NCBI RefSeq assembly: GCF_000143415.4
Contig: NW_003314284.1
Span: 496,001-560,000 of the forward strand
From: Selaginella moellendorffii
Taxonomy: Eukaryota > Plantae > Lycopodiophyta
DNA length: 64,000 bases
Direction: 5' to 3'
The notes beneath the pieces were generated by a model. The model searched no databases, was not told the DNA's origin, and was given only the letters and a program-made list of their open reading frames with translations. This document shows positions 4,341 through 53,822 of this stretch, piece by piece (the first letter of the stretch is position 1; each line of letters begins with the position of its first letter). Made by a program: the position numbers and the translations under genes.

Positions 4341-4921
4341 AGCTCGCAAGAACCCTAATTCCCGAAAATAGATAGCTTAAAAAATCACACTCCTTTTTTG
4401 TAAAAGTATCAACCTTTTATCCAGCAACATGCGACGGTGACAGCTGTAGGAGGAAATCTGGGCCGTTGAAATAGGATAAAGCGTGAATATACTCGGCTGT
4501 TTGGGGTTCGAATCCCCGCCAAAATTGGGGAAATATCTTCAAGTAGGGCTGTGACACGGGGTGGCGGCAGACGGATCCCGGCCGTCGCTCCGCCGGATCA
4601 AACGGACGTTGCGGTGCCGCTGGGACTGGCTGTTGGATGCGCGCCACGTGCCCGCCCTGGGCCAATCGCCGCGGTCCACTGGAATTTCCCTCTATCCTTG
4701 TGCTGTTTTGTGTTCCATCTCTCTCTCTCCCTGTCTCTCCCGGAGCTTGGGAAGGCCAGGGGCGCGGAGGCTTTAGGGTTTAGTTAGGGCCTTATGCCGC
4801 TGGCTCGCACGGCGCTGGAGGAGGAGACGGCGTAGAGGCGCGCGGCCCTCCCCGGCGCGGAAGCTTTCCAAGGTTCTTGTTTTTCTCTCAAGGCGAGGCT
4901 AGGGTTCTTCCGCCAGGAAAT

Positions 4922-34675: not shown

Positions 34676-34765
34676 AGCTCGGCGCAAAGAAGAATGCGCG
34701 GGAAAAATATAAAGGGTTTAGGGCTCTAGCTAAATCTTTAACACGTGGCACTAATTAACAGTTAA

Positions 34766-34847
34766 GCTGCTTTGGCCGAGTGGTTAAGGCGTGTGCCTGC
34801 TAAGTACATGGGATTTTCCCGCGAGAGTTCGAATCTCTCAGGCAACG
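34766..34847 (+). tRNA. trnS-GCU: tRNA-Ser (anticodon GCU)
   Basis: 82 nt; A-box TGGCCGAGTGG, anticodon loop CTGCTAA, long variable arm, GTTCGAATC T-loop, T6 terminator just downstream. Acceptor stem has a C:A mismatch at pair 2. Confidence 0.95.
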
Positions 34848-34935: not shown

Positions 34936-37716
34936 ATGGTGTTGCAAGCACAATGGGTTCTTCCTCGAGATTGCGACGCTGCCATGGTAAGGAGGAGCTC
35001 AGGTAGCTAGATTCAAGCTTAATTTCGGTGGATCTCCAGGAAACGCTAGCACAGACTCTACTAGATCACGGCCAGGAGCATCTTTTCGAGGGTTGGCCAG
35101 AGCCGGGAATCGGCGACGATGACAAAGCGAGATTTTTCAATCAGGTACCACATTGGATGATTGAATCGACGTGGTTTGATTTATCTTTCTACTGAATTGT
35201 AGGTGAAGAAGCTAGACGCGAACTATCCAGGCGGATTAGTGGCATACATTGACAATGCTCGAAAGCTACTGGCGGATTCTAAAGCCGGTAGAAATCCTTT
35301 CGATGGCTATGTCCCATCGGTAAGAAAGTTTTCCTTTAATTTCCTTTCTCTCGTCTCGGTGTTGATGGAGAATTCTTATGTTGTCATAAGGTTCCTTCTG
35401 GCGAGCGTCTTTACTATGGAGACGAACGCTTTGTTCGTTTCGAAGAGGCCGGTGTTAAGGCAGCGTCTAACGCAGCGTTCGTGTTAGTTGCCGGTGGACT
35501 TGGTGAGCGTCTAGGCTATACTGGAATCAAGGTACAGTGGAAAAATAAAAAATACAAAGGAAAAATGCAAGAAAATAAAAAAGAAGTTGGATTTCTGATT
35601 GTATTTTCCCTGCAGGTAGCATTACCTTCCGAAACAACTACAGGAACCTGCTTTTTGGAACTCTACATCAAGAACATTTTGGCGCTACAGGAATTTTCCT
35701 CCGCTACACGTACGTGATTTCCTAACTTTCGGGACCATTTGAGCTGTTGCTTTTCCTTCAGGTCCAATTCCCTTTGTAATTATGACATCCGACGACACTC
35801 ACGCAATGACTGAAAAGCTTCTCAAGGAAAACAATTTCTTTGGAATGGATCCAAGCCAAGTAACTCTTCTGAAACAGGTAGAAGCACGTCTAGAGACGTA
35901 GCATCTTCAAACTCATGCTTCCTTTCGCAGGAGAAAGTCGCGTGCTTGGCTGATAATTTTGCTAGATTAGCTCGGAATCCTTCTGACAAGTATTCTATCC
36001 AAGTACGCCACGACTCTAGCTCCTTTTCTTCGAAAACGCGCTAAAGCTTTGTTTTTTTTCTGTAGACGAAGCCGCACGGCCACGGAGACGTACATGCTGT
36101 TCTTTACTCAAGCGGCATTCTTTCCAGATGGTAAGTAAAGGTCTGTCTCATAGTGCGTGACTTGAAAAAATCTTCTTGGAAGGAAACTGTCCGGAGTCAA
36201 GTGGCTTATATTTTTCCAGGACACAAACGGACTGCTGTTCAAGGTAACTCTCTTTGTTTTTATTCGACAAAGCGGCTCAATCTTCAGATGACATAGGCAA
36301 TACCTGCGTCATTAGGCGTCAGTGTTACAAATGACCTGGACGTAAATTCTTTGGCTGTTCCACGTAAGGCAAAAGAGCCGATCGGAGGAATAGCTCGGCT
36401 GACACACACAAACGGTTTGAAAATTGCTGGTTTACAATCTGTTCGTGCTGACCGTGGAACAGGATCTGAAATGGTCATCAATGTCGAGTACAATCAACTT
36501 GATCCTTTGCTACGTAATACCGGATACGAAGACGGAGACGTAAATGACGAGACTGGATACTCTCCATATCCAGGAAACATCAACCAGGTAACTTTTACGT
36601 CGTCGAGGAATTTCCAGCCGATCTAATCACGCACATAACAGCTCGTGTTAAAGCTCGACTCTTATTTGGAGGAGCTCACCAAGACAAACGGCGCCATCGT
36701 TGAGTTTGTCAATCCAAAGTACGTTCATGCATTTAGTGCAGGATTTTGTTTCGTGCTCAAACAGATCTCCGAAACAACAGATACAAAGATGCGGGCAGGG
36801 AAGAATTTAAATCCTCTACGAGGCTCGAGTGCATGATGCAAGACTATCCAAGAACATTGTCGCCTTCGGCAAAAGTTGGCTTCACGGTAACTTTTGTCAC
36901 CTCTTTTGTATTTCGTCTACACTACTTTCTCGTCTACAGGTTATGGATACATGGCTGGCATATGCACCCGTGAAGAACAACCCGGAGGATGCTGCAAAGG
37001 TATCCATTTTTTTCAATTTGTTTACAGGGATTTAGATTTGTAAGACTCGCAGGTTCCGGAAGGAAATCCTAGACACAGTGCAACGACTGGCGAAATGGCA
37101 ATCTACAAAGCCAACAGCCTCATCTTGAAGAAGGTCTTTGATTCTTTCTTTCCTCTAGTTTTTCTATATCTCCAATGTTTACTCCTCAGGCTGGCGTGAA
37201 GATTGGGAGCCCCACAATCGAGACTTTCAACGGGCAAGAGGTGGAGGTGTGGCCGCGAGTGGTGTGGAGTCCGAGCTGGGGGCTTACGTCCTCGGACGTG
37301 AAAAGAAAGATCTCTGGTTCTTGCGAGATCACGCAAAGATCCACTCTAGTCATTCGAGGCGCGAATGTGTCGTTCAAGGACCTCTACCTGGACGGTGCTC
37401 TTGTCATTGACGCGAGCAAGCACTCTGAGGTATGTTAACTCTCGTGAAAACTTGATTTATTACTCGTTTTTTCTTTGGCTTCTTGTGCCAGGTCGAGATC
37501 CACTCGATCAGAGTTGTCAACGATGGCTGGGAGTTTCAAAAGGTGGGCTCCAAAGACGTGTCAGTGCCTGAGCAATATAGAATCCGGGGATTTATTACTA
37601 AGCAACTGGACCACAAGGAGCTGGAATTCGATCTTCCAGGGAGCTATTTAATCGCATGCGATGACACGGATGAGCTAAGCGGGCGAAGAGGCGAAGAGGC
37701 GAACGCCTTCGCTTAG
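34936..37716 (+). CDS. USP: UDP-sugar pyrophosphorylase, multi-exon
   Basis: [80 protein letters not shown]. Start codon is uncertain (34936 or 34984). Confidence 0.95.
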
Positions 37717-37790: not shown

Positions 37791-38583
37791 TCATTCCTGC
37801 CAGAAAAATAATCCCAATTATGGCAACAAAAGAAAACAATTTAAGCTTACAGCAAGTAGACAGGATTTTTCCATGATCTCGTTGGTTCCCGGGTTGACAA
37901 CGATATCGCAACTAAGTTTCGCCTACAAGGAAGAACATCATTTAGGAAAAAAAAGCAAGATTTTTTACCTCTAAGTGAGGGTGGACGAGCAAAAACTCCA
38001 AATTCCCGGAAAAGTTCATGTCCGTCTCTAGAGGCAATCTCCCCCTGGCGATATCCAAGAGTAAACTCCCAGCATTCACAAACACTCGCATGCCTTTGAG
38101 ATCCATCACCCCGTCCACGGTGACAACTTTCAGCGCTGGGATCTCGCCGCCTTCCAAGACCACCCGGCCGAGCTTATCGCCCCGGTACCCGAGCTCCACC
38201 ACAATCCTGTCGTAGCGCACACCAAAGTAATTGGGATTCCTCACAAGCAATTGGACTTGAAACTTCAAATCCAAATCCAGCCCCAAATCGTTGGACCGCT
38301 GCTGCTGCTCAACGATCGCCCTCTTGAGGCTGTCCCAAGACATGCTCACAAGCTCCGTCTTCTGCACCTCGATCTTCACATCGCTCGGCCACAGCATAAA
38401 CGCCGTGAAGCCCAACACGAGAATTATCGGATACAAGACTGTGAAGCACTGGAAAGCGCAGCTCTTCGTCTTACTGGACTCGAGAACCGGAGGGCGACCA
38501 TCCAGCGGCGCGTAGTAGTGATGGTGCACGACCGGGTAGCCGATCGCCTCGCCTCTGCCCTCCTCCTTCGTCATAGCGCCCAT
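37791..38583 (-). CDS. LEA_2 / NHL-like single-TM protein (3 exons, last exon encodes only Glu-stop)
   Basis: TM helix ending LWPSD, VRNPNYFGVRYD motif, GYRG, LSCDIVVNP...KSC. Confidence 0.88.
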
Positions 38584-39044
38584 AAACCCTAGAATTCCCT
38601 GAAGAGCCCTAATTTCCCAGCAAGCCCTAAAGCTGTTTAATAGCTCCCTTTTCAAAAATTTAAAACTTTTACCCGCGCTTTCCGCCTGGATAACTTCGGA
38701 GTGGATAGATTTACCATCACTCGACTTATAACACTCATGTGGGGATTCGGGAATGATGGAAGAAAAAGCCCGGCCAAGGCGAACGAGAAAGCGATGGCGA
38801 CTGGAATGGATTGGATTGGATTGGATTGGCGAAAACGAGAAGGAAAAAGAAAGACATTTTTATCGTGGGAGGATTGATGGATGGAAAAGGCTGGCCTCGC
38901 CTGGCGCCTGGAATTCGGCTGGACCGCGGCTGGCTGGCACATTTAACTTACAATGTTGGCGTCGTCTCGTCGTGTAATCTAGGAACCCAAGATTGTCACG
39001 AAAAGACCCACCATGTTATAAACAGAATGAGGAAAATGCGCGCC

Positions 39045-39360
39045 AAGGGAATCGAACCGGGCACGCCATCCCCGCAACCATGTACGGGGCATTTTCAAAC
39101 CGCATGGCAATCGCGTGCCGCCACGTGGTGAGGTGAAACCTTCTTCACCACGGATGTATTTACGGCGGAGCGGTAAACCCTAGGCTCCCCAGCCGTGCCG
39201 TTCGATGCCGGGATCGTGGGGCTCGTACGCCGGCACGTGGACAGCAGGTGGTATTTATCCTGCCGTTTGTGGAAATGGTATTCGCGTTTAAATATGATGG
39301 AATTTCCACAATTAGGCGGCACAGTAAAGCTCTCGGTACTTCGCCAAAACCCCCCTTTTT
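39045..39360 (+). ncRNA. Candidate structured Pol III ncRNA (telomerase-RNA-like), unverified
   Basis: TTATAAA at ~39016 and a weak USE-like AACCCAAGATTG at ~38984 upstream; internal TAAACCCTA (39174-39182); several hairpins; ends CCCCCC-TTTTT-aagc-T9. Confidence 0.35.
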
Positions 39361-39620
39361 AAGCTTTTTTTTTCTCTCTTTTTATTCCTCTCTCCTCCTT
39401 CGCATCTTCCTCTTCGCTTCCCTCTCGAAGCGTGAAGGAAGATCACTGGTGTGCTGTCCGTAGGCGCCCTAGAAAATCTTGTGGCGCTAGTGGGAGGGAG
39501 GATCAAAGCCGCGGCCCTAGGCGCTCAAGATCGAGCGCGCCCTTAACGGATCGCTCGATCGTCGCGGCGTAGCTATAGATCTCTTTCTTGCGAATCGGGG
39601 GAATCAATCGAGGAAATATC

Positions 39621-52647: not shown

Positions 52648-53822
52648 GTCGGTGGTGGTGGTATGCTAGTGAAGATGACCTAATGAGATTAGTGTGTTGT
52701 TGCCTGGCACGCGCTCTTTTTAAATTAAAGGTCATGGACACGTCATAGATTGATCACAGTGAAATACCTTGACGAATCCACCACAGCCGAAGAGGAGTGC
52801 CACCATTGCCTCAAAGTTGAGCGTCTTATAAGTATTTATTTTTTTAGATAAATTTTAAAAATGTAAATATATGTACATATTACCTTGCCTAGGTATATAA
52901 TAATATAACATATGAATTGTTTATTCGGGATTGAATCTACTCCATCCATTTTGTATATAAATAAGGGTATAAATCCCAATCAATATAATTATTTCTATAT
53001 CTTGAGCACATATTTATATTTATCTTATGGTGGTGAAGTGTTTTATTAAAAAAGCTCATCTATTTTTTTCTTCTTCCATAATATTTCTTCCTCAATTTTT
53101 CTTACTTTCTCCTTTTTGTATTAATGCTTTAAACACTTTTTTGTTCAAAGAAGGGGGGATAAAGGATGGACATGAGTCTAACTTTAATAATAGAGTGAGA
53201 ATGAGTGGATATGGTAGTGGAATGAGTATGAGCCCAAATCCTAATCCACATATTTATAACTTTCATAAAGAGTTATATTGAATAGTTGTAATAATGGAGT
53301 GAGGTCGAATATACATGGTAAAATAAAAATTACCACAACAAATCAAATGTTTCAAAATTTACATTTTCTTTGAAAAAGGCATAAAAAGAATGTAAAAGAT
53401 AAATGGAGTAAGTCTAACTCCTTATATGCGGTGTTAGATGAAGGTGAAAGTGATAAATCTGAGTTAATACAAGTCTTAAATATTAATCCAAGGAAAGTAA
53501 ATGATTATAAATTTAAGTTAATAGAGTTGGTGGGCAGACTTAAAGGTAGGATGTGTTATTTGCTATAATAACATTTTGTAAATTGAAATGACTCTTAAAG
53601 TCCTTTCCTTTAATTTAGTATTAGGCTTCAAGGTTAGTAGCTGCACTCTAAACCCTATAATTACTAATAAATAAATTTGAAATTAATATAGTTTAAAACA
53701 TCTAATCATTAATTTTTGTTTTAGCTACTAATTTTAAAATGTGACAAATTAGTTTTATGAGTACTTAAGATATGGGAATAAATACATTAATTGGGGTTAA
53801 AACCCCTACTTATATACATGAA

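Follow-up and report, generated by a model that had tools for sequence, protein, structure and literature searches.

The window analysed in this study is a 64,000-nt stretch of the genome of the lycophyte Selaginella moellendorffii and corresponds, on the same strand, to GL377588.1:496001-560000. Within it, a gene of the dienelactone-hydrolase (DLH) family is separated by a gap of 1,037 bp from a LEA_2 gene, whose ORF shows 100% identity to an S. moellendorffii protein. This gap harbours a candidate RNA gene on the plus strand (39045-39360; in assembly coordinates, GL377588.1:535045-535360). The gene order around the candidate is identical in the second haplotype, GL377623.1, where an allelic copy is present (GL377623.1:466955-467270, minus strand). 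Between the window and GL377623.1 there are ~80 differences in 7 kb. An 11-bp indel distinguishes the haplotypes at 38631-38641, just upstream of the LEA_2 coding start, and a 146-bp stretch (36400-36545) is represented in GL377623.1 by an assembly gap filled with N. The presumed LEA_2 5' region contains a short (GGATT)n microsatellite (38805-38830). The candidate itself contains four SNPs in 318 nt, which equals the density of its surroundings; the comparison of the two haplotypes revealed neither a depletion of SNPs in the candidate nor an informative compensatory change. The interval 39210-39471 is free of haplotype SNPs, although this is not significant.

No protein-coding or repetitive nature could be attributed to the candidate. 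ORFs overlapping it gave no Pfam matches, and exact look-ups of the ORFs inside the candidate stretch matched no assembled contigs. The candidate was negative when examined as a tRNA and as a repeat within the window, with no further copies found there. A search with the LEA_2 protein, carried out for synteny in other lycophytes, returned S. moellendorffii proteins only.

The initial annotation had proposed that the gap contains a gene for a telomerase RNA (TR) or for another RNA transcribed by RNA polymerase III (Pol III). All of the elements that it had listed, including CACGTG at 39122 and 39234, were found where it had placed them. They are collected in Table 1 together with the features identified in our analysis.

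Table 1. Features of the candidate RNA gene and of its flanks, numbered from the first nucleotide of the window.
Feature	Position	Strand	Remark
LEA_2 coding start	38583	minus	
USE-like AACCCAAGATTG	38984-38995	+	read in the sequence
Weak USE-like element CCCAAGATTG	38986-38995	+	CCCAAGATCG in haplotype 2
TATA box TTATAAA	39016-39022	+	TATAAA at 39017-39022
Predicted start AAGGG	39045-39049	+	placed from the position of the TATA box
Predicted transcript, ~310-316 nt	39045-39360	+	from AAGGG to the first T5+ run
Internal T4	39092-39095	+	~48 nt into the predicted RNA; unchanged in haplotype 2
Possible core-closing helix, UCGCGUGCCG with CGGCACGUGG	39111-39120 / 39231-39240	+	10 bp, 2 of them G-U
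Two consecutive stems, P1.1a/P1.1b-like	39118-39168	+	end 5 nt before the template
Pairing of CGTGGTGA with TCACCACG	39124-39131 / 39145-39152	+	extended by two more pairs to a 10-bp hairpin
Putative template UAAACCCUA	39174-39182	+	one TTTAGGG repeat plus 2 nt
Pairing of CCCCA with TGGGG	39187-39191 / 39217-39221	+	read in the sequence
Block TGGGGCTCGTACGCCGGC, matching the AtTR pseudoknot core	39217-39234	+	15/18 identity
Pairing of CGGCA with TGCCG	39231-39235 / 39261-39265	+	read in the sequence
Long 3' hairpin, P4/P5/P6-like	39261-39322	+	A/U-rich tip; contains the 10-bp perfect stem of the next line
Pairing of TTGTGGAAAT with ATTTCCACAA	39267-39276 / 39302-39311	+	10-bp perfect stem
C6	39350-39355	+	read in the sequence
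T5 / T9 Pol III-type terminators	39356-39360 / 39365-39373	+	directly and shortly after C6
DLH-family gene coding start	39622	plus	

As a reference we used the TR of Arabidopsis thaliana (AtTR, identical to the lncRNA AtR8), located at Ga0041059_1003942:2951-3218 on the minus strand and 268 nt in length as published. The contig was retrieved by a metagenome scan with a consensus of template, gap and block, which returned two Arabidopsis contigs. The JGI metagenome contigs AR_comb_assmDRAFT_11765909 and Ga0041059_1003942 are A. thaliana nuclear DNA, and on the latter the AtTR/AtR8 gene is complete, from its USE and TATA-like box through the template and the primer sites to the T-run terminator.

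Plant TR genes have been reported to possess canonical USEs, and a USE-TATA spacing of 23-24 bp has been reported for Arabidopsis Pol III genes. The USE-like element upstream of the candidate had been described as weak, and the comparison bore this out. With the consensus TCCCACATCG, which is that of angiosperms and may not be that of Selaginella, the element agrees at 6/10 positions here and at 7/10 in haplotype 2, the difference being due to SNP 38994 T>C. A match to the canonical plant USE with at most 2 mismatches was not present at the expected place. The spacer between the USE-like element and TATAAA is 21 nt, compared with 25 nt in AtTR. The distance from TATAAA to AAGGG at 39045 is as in AtTR, whose nt 1 (AGGGG...) follows the first base of the TATA-like box by 33 nt, and the TATA box of the candidate stands within the range of ~25-33 nt before the start. 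We also examined the position of the TATA box relative to the two protein-coding genes. Seven upstream ATGs (uATGs) are present within 39047-39300 and none from 39300 to the DLH ATG. With seven uATGs downstream of it, the TATA box probably does not belong to the DLH mRNA, and the uATG-free sequence from 39300 suggests that this mRNA probably starts in the pyrimidine tract after ~39300. On the LEA_2 side of the TATA box there are 4 uATGs, including a 96-codon ORF.

Within the predicted RNA, the internal T4, about which the initial annotation had cautioned, is indeed present. It weighs against efficient full-length transcription by Pol III, since AtTR itself ends in T4. At the 3' end, the combination of a T5+ run with a C5+ run within 12 nt upstream is found at 2 of the 256 T5+ runs in the window, the one of the candidate included. 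The C and T runs open a longer tract (39350-39430) that is 86% pyrimidine. In plants, tracts of this kind are typically seen in core promoters or 5' UTRs.

The 9-mer TAAACCCTA, which covers the putative template at 39174-39182, occurs in 4 copies in the window against 0.38 expected, an over-representation of ~10x. As telo-boxes are this common in the window, the 9-mer template alone is uninformative. In the candidate, GG adjoins the template on each side, and copying of these bases would yield CC. The three further exact TAAACCCTA telo-boxes are situated at 4774-4782 (-), 38583-38591 (+) and 53649-53657 (+), the second of which overlaps the LEA_2 start codon. The context of TATA box, terminator and hairpin seen at the candidate is absent from all three. 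In addition, TAAACCCT occurs on the minus strand, ending at 34720, together with CACGTG at 34742, just upstream of a tRNA-Ser(GCU) gene at 34766-34847 (+); this is the same motif pair as in the candidate.

The frequency of this context was estimated with 19,838 random anchor positions in the window. TATA[AT]A 90-200 nt upstream of the anchor was found at a frequency of 0.073, a first T5+ run 100-260 nt downstream at 0.18, a first T5+ run preceded by C5+ at 0.001, and a hairpin of at least 9 bp within 60 nt upstream at 0.014. All four features were found jointly at 0 of the 19,838 anchors. As the thresholds were set after the candidate had been seen, these frequencies somewhat flatter it.

Two regions of the predicted RNA form stable local structures. 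In the first, immediately 5' of the template, stem one is formed by CCGCC (39118-39122) with GGCGG (39164-39168) and stem two is the 10-bp hairpin 39124-39133 with 39143-39152. These stems are the top-scoring helix of the region; the fold of 39115-39172 has an energy of -25.1 kcal/mol (z -3.17), and only 2 of 200 shuffles were as good. In lycophyte and gymnosperm TRs, the template boundary element has been described as consecutive P1.1a and P1.1b stems (PMC12133305). The second region is the long 3' hairpin, for which the fold of 39258-39325 gave a z of -2.87, with 1 of 200 shuffles as good. Sequence similarity between this hairpin and the P4-P6 region of AtTR was not found. The second-best helix of the region is the possible core-closing helix. 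The two stems, the template and the conserved block all lie inside this helix, which also forms in the minimum free energy (MFE) structure of 39108-39243 (z -1.47). As this helix overlaps both CACGTG palindromes, its strands are equally readable as two G-boxes.

The structure as a whole was less distinctive. All 318 nt together fold no better than shuffles (z -0.42), compared with a z of -2.86 for AtTR. When a TR-like fold with paired ends, closed core, free template and 3' hairpin was imposed as a constraint, its energy differed from the MFE by 0.8 kcal/mol. The 5' and 3' ends could pair through AAGGG/CCCUU, CGAA/UUCG and CCGGG/CUCGG, but the duplex is weak, with an energy of -13.6 kcal/mol that does not exceed chance (P ~0.19-0.25), compared with -25.6 kcal/mol (P = 0.04) in AtTR.

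We then turned to the segment downstream of the template that the initial annotation had likened to the conserved region preceding the pseudoknot of plant TRs. P2/P3 and the region 3' of the template have been reported as conserved among these RNAs, and AtTR primers are listed in the supplement of Fajkus 2019 (PMC6765143). The core of one of these primers matches the candidate at 13/16 positions (39217-39232), which is the sole match in the window to the AtTR 16-mer with up to 3 mismatches (0.28 expected). Alignment with the AtTR locus extends the match to the 15/18 block, in agreement with the resemblance noted initially. When both sequences were anchored on TAAACCCT with a shift of at most 10 nt, the block starts 35 nt after the anchor in the candidate and 34 nt after it in AtTR, the one genuine TR compared. 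The chance of obtaining any collinear block of this quality was estimated as 0.0011 from random genomic anchors, as 0.0008 when the anchors were matched for GC, and as 0.0024 from block shuffles. In AtTR, the counterpart of the block comprises the 5' strands of P2 and P3, together with the J2/3u loop, of the sole pseudoknot found there, which has a G/C-rich P2 of 5-6 bp, a loop of 6-8 nt, a P3 of 8-10 bp and a downstream loop of 13 nt. These dimensions agree with those published for plant TRs (PMC8287931).

The similarity to AtTR is concentrated in this block. Whole-length Smith-Waterman alignment gave P = 0.08 with other regions aligned, nhmmer gave no match at the candidate, and similarity of the 3' end to AtTR was not significant (P 0.08-0.2). 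In keeping with the caution expressed in the initial annotation, a single-sequence search of the candidate did not find a P2/P3 pseudoknot of Arabidopsis geometry. The best relaxed pseudoknot model anchored on the conserved block had P = 0.88 against shuffles, compared with P = 0.027 for AtTR. An alternative pseudoknot of 5+7 bp, via the C-tract beside the template, was found in 13% of the controls and had P = 0.095 against spacer shuffles.

A search of Rfam had been suggested as a check of the candidate. With Rfam 15, no relevant match was obtained at the gathering threshold or at E values up to 10. However, the genuine AtTR (Ga0041059_1003942:2700-3500) was not matched either. Rfam 15 is evidently without a plant TR family, and as AtTR is also unmatched, the blank result says nothing on plant TR candidates and the check is void.

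Taking these results together, the leading interpretation from sequence analysis, at about even odds, is that 39045-39360 with its upstream TATA box is the TR gene of S. moellendorffii, or at least belongs to the TR family of land plants. The proposal of a TR gene is strengthened by the conserved block at its anchored position, the pair of stems preceding the template, the 3' hairpin, and the distances to the TATA box and to the C-run/T-run; against it stand the weak USE, the failure to find an Arabidopsis-type pseudoknot, the weak end pairing and the internal T4. The positive signals are jointly very unlikely to occur by chance, and each of the negative signals would be unlikely in a functional plant TR. 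Depending on how the signals are weighted, a rough estimate for a TR would range from quite unlikely to very likely. If the gene does encode a TR, RNA polymerase III would start ~25-30 nt after the TATA box and stop in T5/T9, producing an RNA of ~310 nt. TERT would copy UAAACCCUA (39174-39182) into TTTAGGG repeats, with the two stems ending 5 nt upstream acting as the template boundary. The block 35 nt downstream of the template would form part of the TERT-binding core, and the long 3' hairpin would correspond to the stem-terminus element.

The gap may instead be an ordinary bidirectional Pol II promoter shared by LEA_2 and DLH, as the initial annotation had also considered; we judge this possible, but on balance doubtful. 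The template would then be a telo-box, the CACGTG sites would be G-boxes/ABREs, and the C and T runs would belong to the core promoter or 5' UTR of DLH; there would be no discrete small RNA, and the match to AtTR would be due to chance. The motifs are present. Besides being in excess, TAAACCCTA overlaps the start codon of LEA_2. Of the seven CACGTG sites in the 64 kb of the window, two are found here, 112 bp apart and flanking the telo-box, and a G-box/ABRE is plausible for a LEA gene, one of the two neighbours. The pyrimidine-rich composition of 39350-39430 and the uATG-free zone from ~39300 likewise suggest that the DLH mRNA starts just downstream. The lack of SNP depletion, the weak USE, the internal T4, a pseudoknot and end pairing that do not exceed chance, and the z of the whole fold all agree with this explanation. 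What a promoter explains poorly are the anchored 15/18 block (P ~0.001-0.002), the two perfect 10-bp inverted repeats with z about -3, and the joint occurrence of TATA box, C-run/T-run and hairpin that was seen at none of the control anchors. The TATA box, moreover, suits neither mRNA, with 7 uATGs on the DLH side and 4 on the LEA_2 side.

We consider it improbable that the candidate is a gene for a structured small RNA of some other kind, transcribed by Pol III or by Pol II in the snRNA manner, that has no relation to telomerase and in which the telomere-like 9-mer is incidental. The TATA box, the T-run terminators and the two significantly stable hairpins would be accounted for by such a gene, as would the failure to find the TR-specific pseudoknot and closing stem. 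On the other hand, neither a match to any Rfam family, even at E values up to 10, nor a further copy in the window was found, and the block shared with AtTR lies at a TR-specific distance from the template. It is very unlikely that the locus is a decayed or diverged TR paralogue and that the working gene resides elsewhere. Such a paralogue would have retained its template along with some stems and a portion of the core, and its USE, closing stem and pseudoknot partners would have disappeared. This would account for the mixture of intact and missing TR features and has precedent in the TR paralogues and pseudogenes documented in plants (PMC12169523). However, the 9-nt template is undamaged, as are the two 10-bp stems, and the locus is kept in both haplotypes with divergence at background level.

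Returning to a functional TR gene, a further reading would be a working lycophyte TR with a rewired core, an idea that we put forward with very little confidence. Such an RNA would have no Arabidopsis-type P2/P3 pseudoknot, and its G-run block would pair with the C-tract adjacent to the template. Its degenerate USE would lie inside the bidirectional promoter of the LEA_2/DLH stress genes, and each strand of the core-closing helix would at the same time be a G-box/ABRE site, which could couple transcription of the TR to that of the stress genes.

As lycophyte TRs were reported in 2019, the candidate gene may already be published; if it encodes a TR, it would be a new or an already published member of a known family. 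The TR gene of a model lycophyte would then be pinned to a defined locus. This would aid the reconstitution of telomerase and research on how TRs evolved between bryophytes and seed plants, and would help to interpret the unusual, retroelement-rich chromosome ends of S. moellendorffii. The weak USE, the internal T4 and the absence of a clear pseudoknot would be of interest to specialists only if the RNA is a working TR.

The candidate can be compared with four known systems. Like Pol II promoters that combine a telo-box (AAACCCTA) with G-boxes/ABREs, it has a telo-box between two CACGTG sites, upstream of a pyrimidine tract, in the gap between divergent genes. Such promoters, however, require no pair of perfect 10-bp inverted repeats, no C6T5/T9 signal and no TR-core block at TR spacing. 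With plant type-3 Pol III genes (U6, 7SL, MRP, U3) it shares an upstream TATA box, an oligo-T terminator and a USE-like element whose spacing of 21 nt is roughly that of Pol III genes, but it differs from them in that this element agrees at only 6-7/10 positions with a consensus that was not derived from Selaginella. Relative to AtTR, the candidate is without a canonical USE, whereas in AtTR GTCCCACATCG precedes the TATA-like box by 25 nt. It is also without downstream partners for an AtTR-type P2/P3 pseudoknot, contains an internal T4, and has a closing stem of ~5+9 interrupted pairs in contrast to the strong P1a of AtTR. The distance from start to template is ~130 nt in the candidate and 42 nt in AtTR. 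As in AtTR, there is a 9-nt template for TTTAGGG, equal in length to the AtTR template CUAAACCCU and shifted by one base. A TATA-type box ~30 nt upstream of a start that reads A(A)GGG, a long 3' hairpin and a C-rich tract just before the oligo-T terminator are likewise common to both, and the candidate is of a size reported for plant TRs, which range from 234 to 390 nt. Finally, the lycophyte and gymnosperm TRs of Song 2019, as described in PMC12133305 and PMC8287931, have two stems directly 5' of the template, like those at 39118-39168, and such stems would explain why the 5' part of the candidate RNA is long.
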